In this document: positions 2,900 through 60,170 of the stretch, piece by piece
Layout of the letters: each line of letters opens with the position of its first letter
Position numbering within the stretch: the stretch's first letter is position 1
Origin: Dicyema japonicum
Taxonomy: Eukaryota > Animalia > Dicyemida
Length of the DNA: 64,000 bases
NCBI GenBank assembly: GCA_011109175.1
Contig: RDEW01000006.1
Location: forward strand, 1,510,133 to 1,574,132
Reading direction: 5' to 3'
Program-made: the position numbers and the translations under genes
The notes under the pieces: generated by a model
Told to the model about the DNA's origin: nothing
The model's database searches: none
Seen by the model: only the letters and a program-made list of their open reading frames with translations

Positions 2900-3960
2900 C
2901 GTTCCGCCAATGGTTCCACCCAAATAGCTATTCCATGCGAAACCCATCAATACTGGTTACCTTCGATGAGATCATGAAGATCTAAAGCATCCCTCATGAA
3001 AATCAAACTCAACATGAGAGGGAAACTATTCTTATCGAAAACGGATTCACTTACGATATTGAATGATCCATCGAAAATACAAGGACACCACTCAGAAAGT
3101 CGCTTCGAACACTCTCTCCATATCACTTTCTTTGATAATTGCTTGGTCAGTCTCCTATGAAACAAGAAGCGATCATAATCCGACTGCGGTAAAGATCAGG
3201 GAGAAGCCAACGTGAGGAAAATTCCTAGAAGCTACAATTACGAAGCTACTAATGGAGATTGTTACGCGCAATCTCAGAAGACGGACTGAAGAATCGTTGC
3301 TGGCTATGCCCAAACATTGATTAAATTCTTCGAGTGGTCGTGGGAAGACGGCCTTGATTGAAAAAGAAATCAACTCAAAAAATCTAACCTGATCACTTTG
3401 GAAATGAAACTCCGGATTAAAACATTGAATAATGAAATAACAGACAAAGAGCTCATAGGAGAGAGGTTGAAATGTAATCGTGTGCTCACATCAGTAAATC
3501 GAAATCTTACTCCAAGAGAAGTATGGAAAGCTAATCGAAACGTAGTAAAAAGCGAGGAAATATCGTCTGAAGAAAATTACGCTCAAAGAGATGTGAACAA
3601 CTTGATAAAATTCTACACAAAAATTTTCCACAAGGAGCAAAACTATTATCACGCAGAAAATTGAAAAAGTGTCAGTCCCCTCTTCTTTTAGGAGAACGAT
3701 GTGAGGGATACACTACATTCCGCAGACGCCATACTCTCACGGTTATTCTATTAAAAATTTTGGAGACAAGGGAGTTATCTTCCTATGTCGATTTTCAACT
3801 CTTCTATTTATCAGGCACAGATGCGGCCAATATTTAAACCTGGAAGACTAAAAGATTACCCAGCGTCTTTTAGACTGGTGTCACTACTATGTTACATGTA
3901 AAAAATACTGGAGAGGTTTGTGATCGTGAGAATGAGAATAAAAGAATTATGCCTTTTCAA
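2900..3960 (+). mobile_element. Degenerate APE-type LINE ORF2 fragment (end of endonuclease to start of RT)
   Basis: RSDHNP near 3170 and RPIFKPG...ASFRLVSLL...KILERFV near 3830-3930, with many stops and frameshifts. Most of it is duplicated at 22202-22890. Confidence 0.65.
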
Positions 3961-3968
3961 CACCCTTA

Positions 3969-4002
3969 TAATATTTCGCGGAACCCAGGTTGGGAAACAC
4001 TG
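3969..4002 (-). mobile_element. Solitary hAT terminal inverted repeat
   Basis: Reverse complement is CAGTGTTTCCCAACCTGGGTTCCGCG, the same end type as the 58445-60088 element. Flank GTGTAGAG fits nnnTAnnn. A copy ends at 22918. Confidence 0.7.
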
Positions 4003-4321
4003 GTGTAGAGGATTGTCCTAAAAGTTGGTTTCATCACCAGACGAATTGAATTGAGACTGAAAACTCTGTTAAATTGAGTTGGCATATATTTAAAGAAAAT
4101 CTTATTAAACAGAGCAGCAATTTTCTTCGTAGCATCAAGAGTGTTCGTCGAAAAATATAACAGATCTCTCAAGACACTGTGGTTTGAAACACTAAACCAA
4201 ATCGATAAATCCTCAGATTGAGATATTTTTATGTTAAAAAAGTGAAATTATGAGTGACAAAATGATTATTAAAACCATTTAATCCCTTAAAAACAAAAAG
4301 TTAACTAATCAAGCGATCAAA

Positions 4322-7001
4322 TTATTCTATTATAGGATACATTGGATAGTAAGGAAATCCACAGTTAAATTTCCCACGTGACAGTTTGAAGTATCCAAAT
4401 AAACCCCATGCTTTTCCCCATCCATTTTTGATAAGCCAATACTTTTCACCTTTCATAATTCCATAACCAACAACAGAAATTACATGATTATAGTCCAAGT
4501 TATAACAATTCCTGATATGGTATACTCCTAAAACGTTACATTTATATTTACCTCGGATATAAGCTTGCATGCTTACAAAAGAACCATCAACAAAAACAGT
4601 AATAGGACCAACATTAATGAGATAGTCCATAAGCATTTTTCGTCACCATCAATAAGTTTTTTATAACCAGTCAATTTAAATTTAATATTTGGTTTACCAT
4701 CATATTTACATTTACCCTCCTATAGAGTTATCCCTCGAGAAATTATTACCTTAGCCACATATGGATATCGTTTTTCTGAATTAATTCCTCCGTTATGTTT
4801 AATGTAATTATAAACATCTTCGACAGATCCACCACTGCATCCATGATCTAGACAATCTACTATGTTTTGTTCACTCATAGATTTAAGAATATTGTGTTTG
4901 ATTGCTAAATGTGACTCCAACGTTGCCAACTATATGCATTAAACCAGAGCTTTTCAAAAAATAATTCCCGCGGCACACTAATCGTAAAAAAAATAATCCA
5001 CGGCACACATTAAAAAATTAAATTTTTAAGATGTGTAAAACTAAGGACAAAAATTGAGAATTTAATCCCCAAATTTTTATTAATAATAAAAATAAAATCT
5101 TAATTATTATTGTTTTTGCATATATCATCAATATCAGTCGAATGGTTGACAAAGCCACCCGCATTTCAGCATCAATGTTTCTCAAACTTTCACGTTTGTT
5201 ATATTTCATATTATGCAGCGTAGAAAAACCTGTTTCGCATAAATAGGTCGTTGAAAACTGTAAAATTATGGTCAGTGCTTGTTTTGATAAACTGGGATAT
5301 ATGTTTCGAATATATATCCAGAATTCTCCAATGTCTAACTCCCTCATCATTAATTTTAAAGATCGATCATTAAACAGTGCAATAAGTTCTTCATTTTCTT
5401 TAACAGATAAGTGTTTTGATTCTGACACAAGAAAAGGATTTCGTATCTAAAAATATTTAAAAAATAATAACCCAATCGAATTTTTCAATTTCTAAGTCTG
5501 GAAAATAAGCATCCATTTTGTTTTCCAAAATTATTAAATATTCATTAATCAGTCCCTGTATCGATTCACCATTATATCCTTATTATAATTAAAATATAAA
5601 ATAAACCATTCGTATTAGGAAACATAGTATAATCGCCATCTAAAACCCTTTTTCTCCAAAAACTGATTTTCATTTTCAAAGAATTTAATTTGTCCGTCGA
5701 CGATAAAATAGTCTCAGAACCTCCTTGCATACTTGCAATATTCTCCGACAAAGCACAAATCCGACGAGAAACAGTGTTATCTGACAAAGGTATCTTCATT
5801 ATTTTTTGTTCATATTTATGACCAAACATTGTCCGAGCAATAATACGACAAGCAGGGATTATCAAGTTTTCGCCAATAGTGTGAGGTTTTAGTTGTTTTG
5901 CTATCAATTCTGAGATCAGGTATGAACATTTCAATGATTCCTTTGTGTTTACAAAAGTTTCACTGAACATCATTTGACTAGATCTACGATTCATAGTAAA
6001 AACTAAATAATACTTGTGTTGTTTTTTCAAATGGATAAAATAATCCACAGATTTTTCGGAATAGTCCGGATGCTTGGAAGTAAAATGTCTCTTTAGTTTG
6101 CTAGGAACCATAGCATCATTTGCCAAGACTTCCATACAAATTAGACATTGAGGTAGTTTATTTTTATCTATGCATATAAATCCAAATGACAAATAAGAAT
6201 CTTTATAAGAACGACGAACTGATTTACCCATAACCACGTTGATGCGCACGTTATTAAAAATTATTAAATAATGGTTAACCAATGTAAATGTCATTTATTA
6301 TATAATAAAAAAAATGATTATTTTAATTTATTTATCTTTTTAAATTAATTAGGTCAAAAAATGTATATAAATTTATTCAAATTTGTATTTGGCAGGCGGC
6401 ACACTAGAAATTGTCTCGCGGCACACTTAGTGTGACAACCTCTGCATTAAACATTCGTTAACTGCTCCAAATGCATAGCAAGACCCACAAAAACTTCCTT
6501 GCATTTTTATATCAGTTACACAGTTTCGTTTTACCCAACTAAATGATTTGGGATATCTTGTTTTATTAGCATGCACAGTATAATCTTTTAATAATTCAGC
6601 TGTGTATGTTTGATTAGAATAAGAATTAAATTTGAATTTGTTTGGTTTTTTAAATTCCCTTTTTGTCTACAAAAATATATTTTAAATAAACCAGGTCAGC
6701 AAACTGATTAATTCCCAATTCATACAAAAATCTTCCTTTATTGAAAAGTAAATTGTGATTGTCAATGAATCTTAAGTTTTCAGTAAAAATTGCTTTTCTA
6801 ACCTGGAGTTCTAAGCCAGAATAAGATTTATCTGTATAATAGGTAAAAATAAATTTAACTATATTTATCTATGAAATTATTCCATCGGATTTCATAATAT
6901 TCATCGTCTTTAAGTGAATAGTTGATTGATTCGTATTTGAAATGAATTTTAGATGAAATAAAGTTATTAAAAAATGAAACAAGGAAAACTATGTTGATCA
7001 T
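4322..7001 (-). CDS. Cathepsin L-like papain-family cysteine protease, copy A, with a hAT inside intron 3
   Basis: ATG at 7001. I29 prodomain WNNFIDKYNKSY...RKAIFTENLRFIDNHN...GINQFADLT. Catalytic motifs QG-CGSCYAF, NHVISVVGYG and KNGWG. Introns of 28, 25, 25 (now 1533, at 4930-6462), 30 (4720-4749) and 24 nt (4528-4551). One apparent 1-nt loss in an A-run near 4640. Confidence 0.9.
4945..6444 (-). mobile_element. Non-autonomous Buster/Charlie-type hAT transposon, 1500 bp
   Basis: Perfect 8-bp TSD CATTAAAC at 4937-4944 and 6445-6452. Imperfect TIRs CAGAGCTTTTCAAA / CAGAGGTTGTCACA and subterminal GCGGCACAC repeats at both ends. The empty site is present in the paralogous intron at 23841-23865. 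Confidence 0.95.
5060..6231 (-). pseudogene. Internally deleted hAT transposase with three short introns
   Basis: BED finger CLICMEVLANDAMVPSKLKRHFTSKH, then LSDNTVSRRI, FDW|IRNPF and YPSLSKQAL...FSTTYLCETGFS. Introns at 5984-6013, 5579-5606 and 5447-5471. The central catalytic region is missing. Confidence 0.85.
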
Positions 7002-7049
7002 TTTAATTAATTCTTTCTATTTTTTATTTAATATATATTTTTTTCATTA

Positions 7050-7620
7050 AAAAATATATTTTTTTGTTTTTATGAGTTTATCGAGACGAATTTGATATCG
7101 CATTATTTTTGCTAGATGGTCATTCCTTGATCCTTCACCAGCTCTTTGGGTTCGTGCTGTGTTCTGGTCACGTTGGATTAGGTCTCCTCTGTTATTAGTG
7201 GTAACTTAGGTTACTCATATAGGAAATAGCCTGGAGACAGACCCAAGGAAGACTTGTCTCCTCCGTTCTCCTTCGCTCTCTGCTTTCCGCATCTGTCCGT
7301 AGATTTTCTAGGTCATTGCAGATTTAAATTTCTTCCAATTCCATTAAGATCCTTGTTCAGAGCCACAGAGAGGGTGACTCCTCTGAACGATGGTTTGTTC
7401 TCATTGTTAGACTTACTGTCCATTATTATATTTGCAGAAGCGTTTATGTCTATTCTAAGCACGTGCCCAAACAGTCTCCATCTTGATTCAATAATGTCGA
7501 TGGTTTTAGCCTCTATTGTGCCACAGAGGATAATTACTTTTTTGAAATCTTTTTTGGGCAGCCTAGGCATATTAAATTGCGTAATTGTTTTTGATGAAAT
7601 ATATCTATTTTTTAGCTGTG
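7050..7620 (-). mobile_element. RTE-like LINE 3-prime fragment
   Basis: IESRWRLFGHVLR...KPSFRGVTLSVALNKDL. The same sequence recurs at about 24490-24905. Confidence 0.7.
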
Positions 7621-8649: not shown

Positions 8650-9560
8650 CTTCCTTTACTTTGTCATAATGATGGCTTTCCGTAAATTCACAAAAAAATT
8701 TTTTTTTACCAAATCAAGGATATATATCCAAAATAAGCCTTTTTCTATAATAATACTTACGTTCTTGTTTATGCCTGCATCTATGGTAGAAGATGTGCAG
8801 TTGTGTTTTTTGGAAAAAATAAAATTTCAATTTTCAGAAAATTACGTTAAAACGTGGAGCATTATCAATCAGTAAAAAGAACTTTTTTCTGTAACATTTT
8901 AATTCATCACTATGATGACTGATGAAAACATTAAAAAATCCTGTCATTCAAACCCTTTTATTTACATAGTACAATAATTTTCAAATTCAAAATCTTTAAA
9001 AATCTTGGTCTAAGAACTTTCTTTAAATCTGTGATAGCCTTTACTAATTTCAAAATCATTGATTCTAAGCTTTTCACCAAATACTTTAGCTTATGAAATG
9101 ATCTTCAGTAATAAAACCATTAATTTCATCTATTCAATAAGTGAATTATCAAGTTGATGACGTTTACCACTTGGTTCTTGACTTGTTAGTCGTATTTTCA
9201 CTGTTTTCCAACTTTCACGGTATTTTTAGAATTTCTGAAAATGTAGGAATTCCAAAATAGTTCATTTTTATTTCACAGATATAAGATAATTTTCTGAGAG
9301 TCATTTTTTGATGTATTTTTATTTCACAAATATTACTTTTTTATAACAATGTGGTACTGTTAGATTTTAAATGTAAATTCATGCGAATGTAGAATAAAAA
9401 CAAAATAAATTAATCCGAAATATTTAATAAATGTCTTTCGGATTGCGGATTATGAAGTTTCGGTTTTTTAAAGCCTGTTTGTAAGGAAACTTTGTAAAAT
9501 TTTGCTAACTCATAAAAAATTCGGATTATTGAAGTTCAGATTAATAAGGGTTTACTATAT
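8650..9560 (-). mobile_element. pogo/Tigger-like transposon remnant
   Basis: KVLLLIDNAP and FPKNTTAHLLP.DAGI.KNVKYYYRK-like motifs. The end near 9556 reads TA-TAGTAAACCCTTATTAATC, resembling pogo TIRs. Confidence 0.6.
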
Positions 9561-9899
9561 TGTGAAATTTCTTCCCTGTAAAAGTGAAGAAAATTCATTC
9601 AATTTACTGAAAATATCGGATAAATATGCTTCTCGTTGCAGCCAAATGAAATCGTTTAAAAATTTACAAAATTGAGATTTGAGTAGATTAAAAAAAATTA
9701 AATTCATCTATCAACTCGAAAAAAAAGCCAAAATTCTGCCTCTCTATAACCACCTTACTTTGGTATGTAATAAATGAGATGTATGATCCCATTTCTTTAC
9801 ATAATACTTTAATAGACGCGCTTGTAACGGCCGTGATTTGATATAATTTATCATTTTTATAACATCATATATAACCAATTTTAAACTAGGATGGAATAT

Positions 9900-11627
9900 T
9901 TTTAGAAACAAGAGCACAACGATGTAAAATACAATGTTACTTGCTATATACGGGATACTGCTCCGGCATAGTTCTCGATCATTGCTTGAGCACCCTCAAT
10001 GCAAACATCAATACATTTTTCCCAACATAATTCCCGAGAAATCATATAATCTTGGATTGCGTTGAAAATTTCTTGACCAGTTGTGTTTTTTTTCAAGAGA
10101 TTTACAGAATAAAAAATCTTCTTGCAGTGTAGAATCAAACTAAAAATTATAATCAACTTCATAGGAAGCTTCAGTGGCTTTTAAATTTTCATCTATTATG
10201 AAGTTTTTCATCGAATCTTTCGAGTTACTGAAAGCAGCAAGCATTTTTTCAAAAAAGATGTATCTTTGTGTTTTAATTCTTTGTGCTGACCAACGAAATG
10301 TCGATAGAGCTTAAATGGTATTAATGTCTCTTTTTACATAATTTTGTGGCACATCATACACTCTGCTCTCTTCGAATCGTCCTCAAACTGGCAAAATCCA
10401 TAAGCAAGACTTTCTTAAAATTTCTATTCTAGAAGTGGAATATTACAAGGTTTTCTTATTTATTTAATAATTTTGTCAAAAAATTTAATAACTTCGTCAT
10501 AAAATTTAATAACTCTGTCAAAATGTTTAATAACTTTGTCAAAATACTTAATAACTTTGTAAAGGGTCAAATTAAAAGAAACCAATTTCATAATTAATTG
10601 AAAAAAAACAACTATAAATTAAAATTCTTCATTAGCCAATGCTTTAACTAAATGGCTCCACATGAGGCTGTACAAATTATTACACACATCTGATGGAATT
10701 TCTCCGATGTTTTGGATTGCGTTTATTAATTCATCAAGTTCCTACAATTTTTCTTTTTGATGTTATTTTTTCAAACAGAAAAAAACTCTTCACTTGGATT
10801 AAGTTGAGGAGTATAAGGAGGCAAAAAATACAACATTTTTTAATTGCTCGCTCTTGTGAATTGATGCATTGTCACATATCATTACCATGTCTTAAATAAA
10901 ACATATAACCATACTTTTTTCCCTGCATGTTCAAGCTTATAATTAAGATGTATTACAAAATCAATGAACGTCTCCGCGCGATAAGGGGAGGAATTGATTT
11001 CGTAATGTAAAAGGCCGTCCACAGAAATAGCAGCACAAATAGAGAAATTTTTCTCTTTCATGTTTCTAATATATTTTTTTCGGAGTAACTCCTTTTATAG
11101 ATCTTCCAAATTTGGATCTCATCGAACAATTGACTCCCATTTCGTCTATAAAAAATAAGCCGTCGATTATCAATTTAAATTATTTTTCTGGCATATCTCT
11201 ATCTTTCTTCCACATTTATTGTAGAATTTCTCGCCATAGGTACAAATCGAATTTTCTTAAAACTATATCCGAATGTCTCTAGCGTCCTATTTATTGTCGA
11301 TAGAGAGACATGTTTTTTTGCACATCAAATAAAGAATTTTTGTAAATTCTTCAGCGTAAATGAAGCATCTTCTTCAATTATTTTAGTCAAAAATAAGATG
11401 TCCGATGAATTAAGTTTTTTTTTCGTCCACAATTATTTCTTGTTGAGGCAACATTTTGACAAAGTTATATAAATTTTATGACAAAGTTATTAAATTATTT
11501 GACAAAGTTATTGAATAAATAGGAAAACCCTGTATAATAAAATATTTAATTTAAATTAATTTTTTATATATCATAATTTTTTTGAGGCACCCCGGATTTA
11601 AAATGAGGCATACTTTGGGAACCACTG
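9900..11627 (-). mobile_element. Buster-type hAT remnant interrupted by a Tc1-like element
   Basis: BED finger ECMMCHKIM...KLYRHF near 10330, KATEASYEV and WEKCIDVCIEGAQAM. TIR TTGGGAACCACTG ends at 11627. The other end was not found. Confidence 0.75.
10446..11532 (-). mobile_element. IS630-Tc1-family DNA transposon, degenerate, 1087 bp
   Basis: TA at both flanks (10444-10445 and 11533-11534). TIRs CAAGGTTTTCTTATTTATT / CAGGGTTTTCCTATTTATT with internal 20-21 bp repeats. Motifs YSFKKI, FIDEMG, KNFSICAAIS, ICDNASIHK and LPPYTPQLNPSEE. Confidence 0.9.
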
Positions 11628-18335: not shown

Positions 18336-18579
18336 TATATATAGTTTTTAACAATTATTAGTAATTTACTAATATAAAAAATAAAATGCTAGTTAGTGAT
18401 ATGGTTGAGGCTGATGTCTCTTGCATAGTTCTGTAATATTTGGCCTTGACAGGGATAAACGCAGGTCTTTTTCCACATACAGTAGGCGCGTTTTATGATA
18501 TATATTTGTTAATGCAGAAAATCCACTTTCACATAGATAAATAGTTGAAATGGAGGCCAAATGGTAATGGTTACGAGGG

Positions 18580-20700
18580 ATTAGTACTTATGGATCTTCT
18601 TGACCTCCGCCTGGTCCGCTTCGTCTCCAGGAGAGTGCGTCGCCGTCAGCAATCTGGCTCCTGAGAAGGTGTCCACACACGTTGCATCCCAGACGAGTGA
18701 TTTTCCGTGGGAGTATGGGAACAACGTCATTCCATCCGACCTCTCCATAGCCTCTGTCGAAGCCCAATGGTTCCAATTGGGCCGGAAATCCCGCAGAATT
18801 GAAGGCTCGAAAGATGATGTCATTGAGGGCTGCGTGGCGCGAGGCTCGACCAGCACTCCGTCGGCAAGAGAGTGGATGTAATCCTTTCGCATCAACGTCT
18901 CCGCCGCAACGGCATTTGTGTCTCTGGCATATGTCCAGTCCTAGGCGCAGTGACACCCTGATCCTCAAGCTGTTTTCGTCAAGGAGGGTCCCCAGATGTG
19001 GGCAAGGTAGGGCCACGAGCCAGACTCTATTTCCGCGATGTGCGGCCGACATAATGCTTGCTAGTCGGTGTGGTTAGTGCTTATATTCGCGGCCTCCAGA
19101 GTGCTCATACATGCGGTTGAATCCCAACTCTTCTGGCAAACAAAGTTCGACGGGAATTCCAAGTCCAACTCATCCACAACTTGCAAACTCTGTCAAGCTC
19201 CGAGTCCAAGGTATGTCCGGTTGCGTTACGTAGGACTGTTGGGCCAAGCGACTGCAGCTCGCAAGGGATGAAAAGTAGGCAGGCAGGGCGGCTTCAAGGA
19301 GGAATCTCAACCAATACCCCCATTTCTCGCAGGTTGTTTGCACATAGTCCAGCACCAGATCATCAATTTGACATTCAGTATTGACTCCACCGATCGTCTC
19401 AGAGTCATCAGCCGACTATAGTGCATTCCGGTTCAAAACATGGTGAACATCTCAAAATGTACATCATCTTCGACATGGAAATACAATTTTTGAGCAAGAA
19501 GAAAGACACATGTGGATCCAAAGATGATACTCTTTTTGTATAAGCTTCAACTTCATTATTCTTACTGGTAAGGCATTTTTCCAGCTCGTCGTTTCCGAGA
19601 GGGCAGCCAAGGAAGTGTACCTTTTCCAAGGAGGATATGCTGAAACCTGGAACTAGGGATCTGAATTCTTGTCAGGCAGTAGAAAAGTTTGGAGAGAGCA
19701 TGAATATTGATCAGTTCCGATTTCATAACGTTGACACTTAAAACCAATTCGATTAGAGCTGGAATGGTTGAAGAAATATCCTGAATACGTTCTCCATGAG
19801 CCAGCTATTGTAGGGTCGTCCAAGTACCACAGGTTGAGTTCATAGTTTATGCTTCGTGCCACTGTGTCAATTGTCATTCAAAAAGCAAAGGCCTTAGAGG
19901 GTCTCCCTGCTAAACGCCTGTGCGTGAATAAACGATATCGTTTCCGTAAACTAGTCCGTCCATACGATAAGTGTACAAGTCGGCAAATCTTTGGAGCTCT
20001 CTTCGAATAAATTTCCAAAATACAGTCTCTTCTCAGCGTGTTGAAGGCATTTGATATATCAAGCTTCAGACCTAGCCTTTGGGTCTGAGAATTATTGTTG
20101 TTGATATAACCCCTCGCGGACTGGACTGCTGCTTCGCAACCGCCGGTCACTCCCACACCAAGTTGAGTCGGAAACAGCTCTTCAACAACATTGTGGGAGA
20201 CTCTCCGGGCAGCGATTTTAGCAGCAAGCCTTCGAAAGTATGTGCCGATCGCAATTGAGCGGACACCTCCATCCCCTTTTCGGAATGCCAATAGATGTCC
20301 ACAAAAAAGAAGATCTCTAGCAAATTTTGGAATATCACCATTAACTATTCGAGTAAACAGCAAGGTGATAGACGTTAACAAGGCACGGCTGGCTTCTGCA
20401 GTAGCTCTAGAAGTTATGTCCTTCCGTGGGAATAAATGCCGGGAGGTCTTCTGGCATTGTCAAGTTCCGCTGGTTCGGTGGTATAGCAGGGTGCTTCCAA
20501 GCAAGATGTACAATTCAAACCGTACTTCCTGCGTTACCATTTCGCCCACATTGCCGCGGAGACAACTGGAACTGTAGGCGCGAAGACAGAGGCCTTTCTC
20601 CACAGCATTGGAAGCAAACTCGCCTCAAAAAGGTGTAAGACACGGGAGGTACTCCGGTTGAGGCAGAAGCTCGAAATGGCGACTATCAGAGGTAACGCCT
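18580..20700 (-). mobile_element. CRE-clade (RLE-type) non-LTR retrotransposon, long degenerate copy
   Basis: RT: GGVRSIAIGTYFRRLAAK, TQLGVGVTGGCEAAV, LKLDISNAFNTLRRD, WYLDDPTI. CCHC knuckle CRCG...HPLSC...RH. RLE: DGMTLFPYSHGKSLVWDATCVDT. Multiple frameshifts. Confidence 0.85.
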
Positions 20701-20779
20701 TCCCATTCTATCGTCTTAATTACTGCCTAATTTTCATTATATAGTATATTAAAATTTAAAAATAAAAAAGTAGTAGAAA

Positions 20780-22190
20780 ACTGGACCAAAACTTTTAATG
20801 TTTTGTTTGCCAGAATAGGATATTCTTTTTTGACAATCAGCCAAAAAATCAATATCAAGCTGTAAATATTCTATTTTTAACGTTCTGTCACTTGAAACAA
20901 ACGCAATTTCTTCTTCCTCTTTTAATGTAAGCTAGTTTCTAGTTATTTTGTACTCAGCAAAAGGATTCCTCACCCAATCATAGAGTTCAACTTATGTGGG
21001 TGGAGAATAATTATTCGTACATGTAAATACTCCAAATGGTCTACAATTTGTGAAACAATTTATCTAAAATTTCTTTATTGCACATGAAGAAACATTTCCA
21101 AGTTGCCATTCATGATATGTCGTTTCCATATTTGTAGTTTTTTCAGAAAAGCAGCTATTTTTGCATGCTGCTATTGCGAACATTGAGTTCATTAAAAATA
21201 TCGGCGAGATATGCTAGTTTGCAACACAACATTCATCACTGAGGCATTCAATAAAGTCATCCAACTTCTCTTGTATACAAAAAGCCAACATTCGTGTCTT
21301 ATTTCATAGAAACGAATATTTCACTTTGAGAACCATCTTCAGTATGCAAAATCAAAACTGAATGCATTTTCACAAAGTTTCGAGAAATGTCGCAATTTCA
21401 AGTCTCATTTTAATGTAATTAATTATTTTTACAGCCATGTTCAAAGGACATTAAAGTTCATGCCCAATAGTTTTTGCAATCAATGTTTGTGAAGAAAACA
21501 ATGCGTGTGAATAATGTTCGAATTCTTATTTTTAGCAATAGAAACAATGCCTTTAAATTGCATAGTCATTGCTGGAGCTCCATCAGTGCAGATACCCAAA
21601 AATGCATTCCAATCCAACTTTATATCCTCAAAATATGAATTTATAAGATTGAAAATGTCATATCCCTTGTTGTTCCAAGCAACTCTTTGCAGGAAATAAA
21701 ATATTCAATAATGGATTCATCGATCATATATCGAATGAAAACAAGGAGTTGCATTCTTCCTGTAATATCTGAGCTTTCATCCACTTGAAGGGCAAAAAAG
21801 GCAAAATAACAGTTTCGGCGAGAGTATGCGATTTCAGATTTTTTAGCAGCAATCTCAGCAACAGCACAATTAGCATGCTGTGCTTTTTCATTTATTTTGA
21901 ATATTTTTGTAAAAGGGAATACTTGAACTTTATTCTGGTCCAATTTCTGCATAAAATAGTCTTTTTTTCTTTGAAAGTCAGGGTGCTTGGTGGAGAAATG
22001 ACGTCAAATTTCGTTGGAGCCATAGCTCTATTCGCAAGTTTTTCACCGCAAACAAGACAGTGATAGAAGGTAATTCATGTCCCCAGTCGATGTGAAAACA
22101 AAGGCAATATAATTTTCTCGATACGATCGATCATTAAGATATTCAGTGTCACAAGACTGCATTTAGACACGCTCAAATTAAATTAATTCG
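20780..22190 (-). mobile_element. Buster-type hAT transposase remnant
   Basis: CLVCGEKLANRAMAP, FALQVDESSDITGRMQLLVFIRY and an uninterrupted YDWVRNPF at about 20960-20985. Confidence 0.85.
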
Positions 22191-22201: not shown

Positions 22202-24905
22202 TCAGAAGACGACGAAGAATCGTTGCTGGCAATGCCCAAACATTGATTAAATTCTTCGAGTGGTCGTGGGAAGACGGCCTTGATTGAAAAAGAAATCAAT
22301 TCAAAAAATCTAACTGATCACTTTGGAAATGAAACTCCGGATTAAAACATTGAATAATGAAATAACAGACAAAGAGCTCATGGACAGAGGTTGAACTCAC
22401 AGCAGTAAATCGAAATCTTACTACAAGATAAGTATGGAAAGCTAATCGAAACGTAGTAAAAAGCGAGGAAATTTCGTCTGAAGATTATGCTCAAAGAGAT
22501 GTGAACAATTTGATAAAATTCTATACAAAAATTTCCCACAAGGACCACAGGAAGTCGAATAAACTATTATCACGCAGAAAATTGAAAAAGTGTCAGTCCT
22601 CTCTTCTTTTAGGAGAGTTATGTGAGAGATACACTACATTCCGCAGACACCATACTCTCACGGTTATTCTATTAAAAATCTTGGAGACAAGGGAGTTATT
22701 TTTCTATGTCGATTTTCAACTCTTCTATTTATCAGGCACAGATGCGGCCAATATTTAAACCTGGAAGACTAAAAGATTACCCAGCGTCTTTTAGACTGGT
22801 GTCACTACTATGTTGCATGTAAAAAATACTGGAGAGGTTTGTGATCGTGAGAATGAGAATAAAAGATTCTAGCTTTTCAACATTCTTATAATATTATAAT
22901 ATAGGTTGGGAAACACTGGTGTAGAGGATTGTCCTAAAAGTTAGTTTCATCACCAGACGAATTGAATTGAGACTGAAAACTCTGCTAAATTGAGTTGGCA
23001 TAAATTTAAAAAAAATTTTATTAAATAAAGCAGCAATTTTCTTCGTAGCATCAAGAGTGTTCGTCGAAAAATATAACAGATCTTTCAAGACACTGTGGTT
23101 TGAAACTGTTGACCATATTGATAATTCAGATTGAGATATTTTTATATTAAAAAAGTGAAATTATGAGTGACAAAATAATTATTAAAACCATTTAATCCCT
23201 TAAAAACGAAAAGTTAACTAATTAAACGATCAAATTATTCTATTATAGGATAAATTGGATAGAAGGAAATCCACAGTTATATTTCCCACGTGACAGTTTG
23301 AGTATCCATATATACCCCATGCTTTTCCCCATCCATTTTTGATAAGCCAATACTTTTCTCCTTTTATAATTCCATAACCAACAACAGAAATTACATGATT
23401 ATAGTCCAAGTTATAACAATTCCTGATATGGTATACTCCTAAAACGTTTCATTTATATTTACCTCGGAGATAAGTTTGCATGCTTACAAAAGAACCATCA
23501 ACACTAACAGTAATAGGACCAACATTAATGAGATAGTCCATAAGCATTTCTTCGTCACCATCATTAAGTCTTTTATAATCAGTCAATTTAAGTTTAATAT
23601 TTGGTTTACCATCATATTTACATTTACGCTCCTATAGAGTTATCCATCGAGAAATTACCTTAGCCACATATGGATATCGTTTTTCAGAATTAATTCCTCC
23701 GTTATTTTTAATGTAATCATAAACATCTTCGATAGATCCACCACTGCATCCATGATCATTTATACAATCTACTATGTTTTGTTCACTCATAGATATAAGA
23801 ATATTGTGTTTGATTGCAAATGTGACTCCAACGTAGCCAACTAAATGCATTAAACATTCGTTAACTGCTCCAAATGCATAGCAAGACCCACAAAAACCTC
23901 CTTGCATTTTTATATCAGTTACACAGTTTCGTTTTACCCAACTAAATGATTTGGGATATCTTGTTTTATTTGCATGCACAGTATAATCTTTAATAATTCA
24001 TCTGTGTATGTTTTATTAGAATAAGAATTAAATTGAATTTGTTTGGTTTTCTAAATTCCCTTCTTGTCTACAAAAATATATTGTAATAAACCAGGTCAGC
24101 AAACTGATTAATTCCCAATTCATACAAAAATCTTCCTTGATTGAAAAGTAAATTGTGATTGTCAATGAATCTTAAGTTTTCAGTAAAAATAGCCTTTCTA
24201 ACCTGGAGTTCTAAGCCAGAATAAGATTTATCTGTAAAATAGTAAAAATAAATTTAACTATATTTCTATGAAATTATTCCATTGGATCTCATAATATTCA
24301 TCGTCTTTAAGTGAATAGTTGATTGATTCGTATTTGAAATGAATTTTAGATGAATAAAGTTATTAAAAATAAAACAAGGAAAATTATGTTGATCATTTTA
24401 ATTAATTCTTTTATTTTTATTTAAATAATTTTAAAAATATATATTTTTTTCATTAAAAAAATATATTTTTTTTGTTTTTATGAGTTTATCGAGACGAATT
24501 TGATAATCGCATTATTTTTGCTAGATGGTCTTTCCTTGATCCTTTACCAGCTCTTTAGGTCTTCTCTGTTATTAGTGGTAACTTAGGTTACTCATATAGG
24601 AAATAGCCTGGAGACAGACCCAAGGAAGACTTGTCTCCTCCGTTCTCCATCGCTCTCTGGTTTGCGCATCTGTCCGTAGATTTTATAGGTCACTGCAGAT
24701 TTAAGTTTCTTCCAATTCCATTAAGATCCTTGTTTAGAGCCACAGAGATGGTTACTTTTTTGAACGATGGTTTGTTCTCATTGTTAAACTAATTGTCCAT
24801 TATTATACTTGCAGGTGCGTTTATGTCCATTCTAAGCACGTGCCCAAACAGTTTTCATCTTGATTCAATAATGTCGATGCTTTTGGCCTCTATTGTGCCA
24901 CAGAC
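22202..24905. repeat. Direct segmental duplicate of about 3273-7526, lacking the 1.5-kb hAT
   Basis: Colinear and highly similar over the LINE remnant, hAT TIR, cathepsin gene and RTE fragment. Similarity ends at GCCACAGA (7526 / 24905). Confidence 0.9.
23235..24396 (-). CDS. Cathepsin L-like protease, copy B (frameshifted as assembled)
   Basis: Same exon-intron structure as copy A, with intact 25-nt intron 3 (23841-23865) and the 24-nt intron at 23439-23462. 1-nt losses near 23818 (CATTTG vs CATTTAG on the gene strand) and near 23300. Confidence 0.8.
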
Positions 24906-58299: not shown

Positions 58300-60170
58300 C
58301 TAAGTAGGTAGAGGATTAGAAGAGAAGGAAGCACTGAAGCATTTTGGAGGATCACTTAATTGTCTCATTTGCTGTTGAGACGTCAGAAATCCTTGGCCTA
58401 CAAGCGGACGATCTAGTCCGTCGAATCCGTTCAATAATCTATAGCAGTAGTTCCCAATCTGGGTTCCGGTAACTCCAGGGTTCCGCGGAGCCAGTTCTAG
58501 GGTTCCGCGAAAATTATTATAAATTATTTAATAATAGTTTTTAATTACACAAACACGGATGAAGGTTTCTGATAAAGAGTACACCTCTGCTACCTCTCAA
58601 CTTGTGGAACTGGCATGCCGTGAGGACATCCCACTTGACTCTAACAGAGATAAATCGACTGACCTGATATGGAGAATAACAGGGAGTTGATAGCACACTC
58701 TTCTTCTAAGAAAAAGAAAAAGATTACCAGCGATCTGGATTAAAATCCGCTCAATTAGATAATTTACTCGTTTACTTTTTCAATTTATTTTTTCCAAAAA
58801 TATAAAATATATTAATCATGATTCTGTTTCAGGTTAGTTAGTCAATTAGTCAATTTTATAAGATTTTTAGTGAGAAAATAATAGCATAGGAGATTCCAAA
58901 AATATTAATAAAAAGGTTTTTTATGATTATAATTTCATAAAAAAATATGATGAAACCTACATCCCATATAGGTTTTCTCAGAACGGATCTGATTTAGCGC
59001 ATAAGACTGAATGTGTGATATGCCATCATATAACGTTTAACACATTTCTATCAAGACATCTATTGATGAAGCATCCTCATTTAAAAAATAAAGATATTTT
59101 TTTTCAAAACAAATTGAATTCATTTACAAGGTGATAGTTGGAAATGTCTAATTTTGCGAAAGACGAACTTAAAATGGACCAGAGCATCCTATGAAGTATA
59201 TACTATTTTAATCGAACAGGTGAGTTATCTTGTAGCACATTGTGGAGAGGCACATTTAGTTAGTTAGTTAAAGCACATTCGCGTTGCCAATAAACATTGT
59301 TTATGGTTTCGCTTGTGCCATGTTTTTTGACTATCCTTTCCGTTAGTCTTCTCCCTCTTTTTCGTTGTCGTGCTCGTCTCTGATTTCGTCCAGATCTTCT
59401 GCATCCATCAGTCGGCCTTCGATCACTGCATAATCCTCCGCAAGTGTCCCGGGAGACAACTTCTTTGACGTCCTCTGAATGTAGAAGATTCAGTATGGCG
59501 TTGAAGGCACGTATAATTGCCAAAAATCTTATAAAGCAATGTTCAAAAAAGATCATCCATACAGAAGTAAGATGATTATCACGTGGAACGATATTGCAAC
59601 GTTTGTTCGAATTAGGAAACGAGCTTTTTGTGTTTCTCAAGAAATAAAATTTTCCATTTTACAAAAATTTGAAAAACAATCTTAGCTTACAAATATCTTA
59701 TTGATTTGACACCAGAATCAACGTCAAAAATGAACCCCCCTTTTTAATTTTTATGAGAACATACATTTCCAAATATCCTGATATCTCAGAAAAGGCTATA
59801 CGTACACTATACTTATTCCAGCGACTTGCTTATGCGGAATATTCAATATATACATCTACCAAAAACAAAATACAGAAATAAACTCAATGCTTCCCTAATA
59901 TGAGGATACAGTTGTCAACAAAAACTCCTAACGTTACACAACTAAAAAGTTACCTCATGTTTATATTAAAATTGTTTTTGGTTATTACTATGTTTTAAGT
60001 GAAAATTGTAATAATTGAATTATAAGGGTTCCGCAAAAATAAATTAACTCAAAAGGTTCCGCGAGCACCTTAAGGTTGGGAACCACTGATCTAAAGGGTC
60101 ACAGAGGATTTACATGAGACTGGATGGCTTTTAGAGCGTATAGCTATTGTCAGAGGAAACAACCTTGCAA
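58300..60170 (+). mobile_element. CRE 3-prime fragment split by a hAT insertion
   Basis: AVETSEILGLQADDLVRRIRSII before the hAT and RVTEDLHETGWLLERIAIVRGN after it. Confidence 0.75.
58445..60088 (+). mobile_element. Non-autonomous Buster-type hAT, 1644 bp, with nested LINE scraps
   Basis: TIRs CAGTAGTTCCCAATCT / CAGTGGTTCCCAACCT, TSD ATCTATAG / ATCTAAAG and subterminal GGTTCCGCG repeats. Degenerate transposase C-terminus (YPDISEKAI...KYRNKLNA) near 59770-59900. Confidence 0.85.

Follow-up and report, generated by a model that had tools for sequence, protein, structure and literature searches.

A deleted Buster-type hAT copy in a cathepsin intron of Dicyema japonicum probably retains three micro-introns

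The 64,000-nt stretch of Dicyema japonicum DNA analysed here (the window) contains a deleted copy of a Buster-type hAT transposon within an intron of a host cathepsin gene. Our best explanation, to which we assign a probability of roughly three in four, is that this copy keeps three spliceosomal micro-introns from an autonomous parent. An internally deleted copy of a high-copy Buster-type hAT would have entered a 25-nt intron of a cathepsin-L-like gene, forming an 8-bp target duplication, and in what remains of the transposase gene, GT-AG micro-introns measuring 30, 28 and 25 nt would survive from that parent. In the parent element, the host spliceosome would have to remove these micro-introns before the transposase could be translated, and further introns are probably present in the part that has been deleted from the copy at 4945-6444. 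The latter, unable to make transposase, would move only via transposase supplied in trans. The features on which this explanation draws are collected in Table 1.

Table 1. Features of the element, its candidate micro-introns and its insertion site, in window coordinates (P0040 and P0031 are homologues of the element protein)
Feature	Position	Strand	Description or basis
Non-autonomous Buster-type hAT element	4945..6444	-	1,500 bp; bounded by 10-nt direct repeat, 8 nt of which are the target duplication
Host cathepsin intron 3	4930..6462	-	25 nt pre-insertion, 1,533 nt now; Pfam Peptidase_C1 position 31 ends exon 3, 32/33 starts exon 4
Target-site duplication GTTTAATG, copy 5' of element	6445..6452	-	Fits Buster consensus nnnTAnnn (PMC3517528)
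Target-site duplication GTTTAATG, copy 3' of element	4937..4944	-	Direct repeat and paralogue comparison
5' terminal inverted repeat CAGAGGTTGTCA	6433..6444	-	10/12 positions match reverse complement of other end
3' terminal inverted repeat, reverse complement CAGAGCTTTTCA	4945..4956	-	10/12 match with 5' end
Exon 1: start codon and BED-type zinc finger	6014..6231	-	40% identity to P0040 from residue 53; Pfam matches below cut-off
Candidate intron 1	5984..6013	-	30 nt, GT..AG, phase 2, multiple of three, stop-free
Exon 2, with in-frame internal deletion junction 5736/5735	5607..5983	-	Alignment to P0040
Candidate intron 2	5579..5606	-	28 nt, GT..AG, phase 1
Exon 3, ~35 codons	5472..5578	-	Aligns to P0031 314-344 and P0040 484-513
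Candidate intron 3	5447..5471	-	25 nt, GT..AG, phase 0
Exon 4: hAT C-terminal dimerisation region, 1-nt frameshift at 5137/5136	5100..5446	-	Pfam PF05699

The gene that flanks the element encodes a papain-family cathepsin (cathepsin-L-like) with an I29 propeptide. A second cathepsin copy is present in a segmental paralogue at 22202-24904, which is 91% identical to 3274-4944 plus 6445-7527 and which has, at ~23865, an empty hAT site with an intact 25-nt intron. This paralogue crosses the insertion point with a single GTTTAATG, which establishes that an insertion took place and that it duplicated 8 bp. The target-site duplication of hAT elements is present as GTTTAATG on both flanks, and the TA at its positions 4-5 agrees with the Buster consensus nnnTAnnn (PMC3517528) in a comparison involving one insertion only. 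A joint of 4934->6443 was considered as an insertion polymorphism and ruled out, the 91%-identical empty-site paralogue explaining this joint at the 90% likeness threshold.

Both termini of the element begin CAGAG and form short terminal inverted repeats, as the hAT superfamily requires. The match of exon 4 to the hAT dimerisation domain PF05699 lies above the cut-off (E 2.2e-5, 24.6 bits against 21.4), and those of exon 1 to zf-BED and zf-C2H2_12 both lie below it. The nearest proteins by source name are FAM200A, ZBED5-like and SCAND3, and homologues of the element protein carry the Pfam domains PF27073 and PF27046 of the FAM200-ZBED5 families. The Buster-type hAT identity proposed in an earlier sequence-only reading is supported by PF05699, the target duplication and these FAM200/ZBED5/SCAND3-type relatives, the Buster assignment being based on closest relatives and target consensus. 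A domesticated gene was ruled out on the grounds of inverted ends, target duplication and high copy number. A search of solved structures returned no Buster structure, and its Hermes match reached only E 0.83. We also observed a subterminal motif, GTGTGCCGCG, repeated with unchanged orientation close to either end of the element (4966-5013 and 6396-6438), and a related motif, GGGTGCC(G/A), near the ends of an intron-less relative, L002 (1-60 and 2540-2568); these may represent a shared, putative transposase-binding site.

Alignment of exon 2 places residues to ~165 against P0040 residues 53 to ~200 and residues 167-207 against P0040 435-475. The in-frame deletion between them has removed ~230 codons (P0040 about 205-434), among them those for the RW motif and the two catalytic aspartates. 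The RNase-H-like DDE catalytic core is absent from the 4945-6444 copy, and the element is therefore hAT-derived and non-autonomous. The 1-nt deletion at 5137/5136 shifts the last ~15 codons, and the frame continues to 5018 instead of ending at the family stop codon expected at 5102-5100. With these codons and both aspartates lost and the frame shifted, this copy cannot make transposase, and the label of transposase that it had been given was not borne out: it is an internally deleted, frameshifted, non-autonomous derivative.

Other members of the family are visible in the reads. Copies that diverge at 5736 go on as ...SENIENNVSFSIKE, matching homologues, and as their contigs continue past this point into the catalytic core, longer copies must be present in the sequenced sample. 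An extra base in about half of the family contigs restores ...STIRPDIDDICK... / ...IRPDIDDICK... as in homologues. Read depth over the element is 10-20x that of the flanks and there are many other deletion joints among the family contigs, indicating that the family is high-copy and consists mostly of deletion derivatives. Apart from the frameshift of the copy itself, all of the well-supported indels listed inside the element are outside exons, in intron 3 or in the untranslated ends. Searches of protein collections found no other family copies, the best identity being 54%, and the host ORF was not on record. Two metagenome scans, one with the site-3 junction pattern (spliced or unspliced) and the other with a 23-mer of the BED-finger coding region, were both empty.

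Re-reading of the DNA reproduced the coordinates and lengths claimed for all three minus-strand segments, and both of the claimed ORFs (5572-6294 and 5018-5428) are present. GT..AG boundaries were found for 3/3 candidate introns, which read, on the minus strand, GTATT...CGTAG (6013-5984), GTTTA...ATAAG (5606-5579) and GTTAT...TTTAG (5471-5447). If candidate intron 1 is retained, the ORF reads on with ten additional residues. Retention of candidate intron 2 shifts the frame, with the ORF stopping at 5572, and retention of candidate intron 3 likewise shifts the frame, with a TAA four codons later. Candidate intron 3 has one extra base at place 5448 in about one-third of family copies (26 as against 25 nt). 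Each of the three segments lies within contigs built from different runs of a single sample, so the DNA is real rather than an artefact of assembly.

Removal of the segments restores colinearity with related proteins. The coding region contains 95 GT..AG pairs of 15-60 nt, and colinearity with intron-less Buster transposases results from the removal of these three only. In a per-site test, where each segment was compared with 83-91 alternatives, the proposed segment was the single best at 3/3 sites, and local alignment scores summed over four full-length homologues rose from 1233 with the three segments in place to 1641 once all of them had been taken out. At site 1, the distance from YF to the (A/C)-S/N-Y/C motif is 26 residues after removal, gapless and as in 7/8 homologues, and 36 if the segment is retained; because this segment is in frame and stop-free, the support for candidate intron 1 consists of spacing. 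The YF-to-N spacing put forward in the sequence-only reading was also recovered (19 residues after removal of the 30 nt versus 20 in the relic near 21950, both having 26 residues from YF to the motif). At site 2, removal restores the frame and gives an MFP-to-YFP length equal to that of P0031, and at site 3 the alignment becomes gapless with P0040 positions 513 and 514 joined exactly. Loss of the 28- and 25-nt segments links the two ORFs via a 35-codon middle exon to give ...EKFDW/IRNPF..., as had been claimed, and the predicted spliced product, aligned with Buster transposases as had been suggested, is colinear with eight homologues. This three-way restoration, by segments that are each the unique best among the 95 candidates, exceeds the fit expected by chance and supports the view that they behave like host-sized introns; we infer that they are actually spliced.

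The introns of the cathepsin gene measure 28, 25, 25, 30 and 24 nt, are all of the form GT(A/T)...AG and leave the Pfam profile coordinates contiguous across the exon junctions. Their counterparts in the paralogue differ by 1-3 nt in length, and there the 24-nt intron contains a stop codon in frame, which fits non-coding sequence. A second gene, at 48249-44965, yields eleven more GT..AG introns of 19-26 nt in a heuristic model. The element segments, at 25-30 nt, are within the host range (24-30 nt in the cathepsin and 19-26 nt in the heuristic model of the second gene), and the description of them as host-type is justified by a form and size in common with the cathepsin introns. Among animals, only myxobolid myxozoans and D. 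japonicum have been reported to possess introns of <30 nt whose sole signals are GTa...AG (2026; PMC13644364). Two further observations concern the cathepsin copies themselves. The exons of the paralogue differ from those of the first copy by several indels of 1-2 nt, and hence either copy, or each of them, may be a pseudogene, or small indel errors may be present in the assembly. In addition, a minus-strand A run in exon 5 of the cathepsin gene that carries the element, at window position ~4635, has a 1-nt frameshift where some read contigs contain an extra base.

The window has ~36% GC and contains reverse-transcriptase relics; the D. japonicum genome has 36.7% GC, 49% repeats and LINE copies (PMC6736024), a closer fit than with a myxozoan. 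An ORF at 19878-20381 (minus strand), whose RVT_1 match (E 1e-4) does not reach the cut-off, probably represents the remains of a non-LTR retrotransposon. At 10450-11400 (minus strand) there is a degraded relic of a Tc1/mariner transposase, within which a 24-nt GT..AG segment (10891-10914) was tried as a Tc1 intron and rejected: it is a multiple of three, a stop follows soon after its removal, the downstream DDE is in another frame and the copy is degraded. There are also four further Buster-type relics in a much more degraded state (20700-22129, 9558-10408, 18396-18560 and 59492-59683), with 27-47% protein identity to P0040.

The only runs with element sequence are four from one sample; they are DNA-like, and host introns and candidate introns alike are unskipped in them. 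Runs X5-X14, labelled with four other organisms (B-E), contain 8%-16% of the element's sampled 31-mers, which could derive from related species, from host tissue carrying the parasite or from horizontal transfer. One alternative to our explanation, unlikely but deserving some weight, is that the segments were introns in an ancestor and that the family is now extinct, with no present-day transcription or splicing. This would accommodate the dead state of the 4945-6444 copy, the retrieval of no intact copy and the lack of an RNA run among the runs with element sequence, but extinction fits poorly with a high copy number that includes many contigs of >=99% identity, with the longer copies in the reads and with an insertion that postdates a duplication whose two copies still share 91% identity.

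The candidate introns are absent from homologues that were checked at the DNA level, a check that covers three homologue loci. The best full-length relative, P0040, is encoded by an uninterrupted 1,914-nt ORF (637 codons) on L002, which has a CAGTG element end (the 5' end is kept) and GTGCC subterminal motifs and is therefore element DNA rather than a transcript. The closest match, P0030 (54% identity), is encoded on a 975-kb genomic contig, L003, with no break at site 2 or site 3, and ~100 retrieved homologues are continuous through site 3. Degraded Buster relics of the window in which the sites are preserved have no site-1 or site-3 inserts. As the sequence-only reading had stated, the relic at 20700-22129 is uninterrupted and reads YDWVRNPF, and that at 9558-10408 is without the BED-proximal intron, having 27 residues at site 1 and no 30-nt insert; the former is without the site-1 insert as well. 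Taken together, the intron-less L002 and L003, the ~100 homologues and the two window relics make gain in this Buster family, rather than loss elsewhere, the simpler reading. The claim that introns of host size were gained is thus favoured, with the closest DNA-checked homologues (L002 and L003) being without them, and we infer that the gain occurred in this lineage. The fuller proposal, that the Buster family gained at least three micro-introns after settling in a lineage with a spliceosome accepting 20-30-nt, GT...AG-only introns, is a tentative one to which we would give less than even odds. A possible route would be short insertions into coding sequence that were harmless once spliced out.

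Alternatively, the segments may be real introns that were not gained in this host lineage, having been ancestral to the Buster subfamily, having shrunk together with the host introns or having been transferred horizontally from another host with tiny introns. The coverage of the DNA-level check (three homologue loci) leaves room for such histories, as do three homologue ORFs (P0011, P0145 and P0086) that start at the W-IRNPF site, which could mark an exon boundary elsewhere, and the element 31-mers in runs labelled with four other organisms. We nevertheless regard these histories as distinctly improbable, given the ~100 homologues unbroken through site 3, the single ORF of the best full-length relative in a genomic element, and the two window relics without a site-1 insert, of which 20700-22129 is also uninterrupted at site 3. 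That the segments are not introns at all, and are instead chance insertions accumulated in a decaying pseudogene copy, is scarcely credible: the copy is clearly defective, through deletion and frameshift, and the runs carrying the sequence are DNA-like and without spliced reads, but all three segments are GT...AG, 25-30 nt long and restore exact colinearity, each as the unique best at its site, they lie in parts of the element covered by the contigs of many other copies, none of the joints and indels listed removes any of them, and the other defects of the element differ in kind. Rare intron-less DNA copies may still occur among a further 28 indel rows and 26 joint rows outside that listing.

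Introns of <30 nt in animals have been accepted only recently (PMC13644364), and a further question is by what means genomes of this kind acquire and maintain their introns. If the family carries several host-style micro-introns, it would provide a way to time intron gain, through intron-less relatives and divergence-dated copies, and to probe minimal splicing signals. As transposon families are young and their copies datable, gains in this family, if the gain reading is true, would count among the latest intron gains that can be dated in an animal, and the element would be dependent on a micro-intron-capable spliceosome. The recent timing of the gain is offered as an idea, and tissue control or a host-range barrier through micro-intron splicing is speculation. 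For annotation, software for transposon or gene finding that expects Buster transposases to be single ORFs, or introns to exceed a minimum length, would misread such elements as pseudogenes.

Comparison with described Buster hATs (TcBuster and AeBuster1, with the domesticated FAM200A/ZBED5/SCAND3) reveals a common nnnTAnnn 8-bp duplication, CAG-type short inverted ends, an N-terminal BED-type finger and a C-terminal hAT dimerisation region with ...STTYLCE.GFS..., and the element protein is 40-51% identical to full-length Buster-type proteins. The described transposases and the closest checked homologues are single ORFs, whereas the D. japonicum family has at least three candidate micro-introns; the 4945-6444 copy further differs in being without the catalytic core.

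Among transposase genes, those of Ac, Tol2 and the P element contain introns. The Tip-group hAT BuT2 has five exons (PMC3942097), and intron gain and loss have been studied in CACTA transposases (PMC4158355). In all of these systems, as would be the case for the D. japonicum family, transposase expression needs host splicing and the introns are of the host's usual form; however, their introns are ~55-150 nt or longer compared with 25-30 nt here. Splicing of the P element is regulated; that of the D. japonicum Buster family is a prediction from DNA. The Paramecium Tc1/mariner elements Sardine, Thon and Anchois have ORFs with predicted introns (PMC3464196) and are similar in that the predicted introns occur in transposon genes of a host whose own introns are tiny. 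They differ in host (a ciliate rather than an animal) and in superfamily (Tc1/mariner rather than hAT), and their introns are likewise predicted only. The Ac-derived Ds elements and hAT MITEs, Mar being an example (PMC3517528), resemble the D. japonicum element in having internal deletions, both ends kept and many deletion variants, whereas in the latter the deletion is in frame and the BED finger, the three candidate introns and the dimerisation region are kept. An expansion of hATs in myxozoans has been reported, with introns unmentioned (bioRxiv 10.64898/2026.02.11.705288). Intron-bearing transposase genes have thus been described before, in hAT, P and CACTA elements, and what is new is their candidate occurrence in the Buster clade and with introns of the animal micro-intron class.
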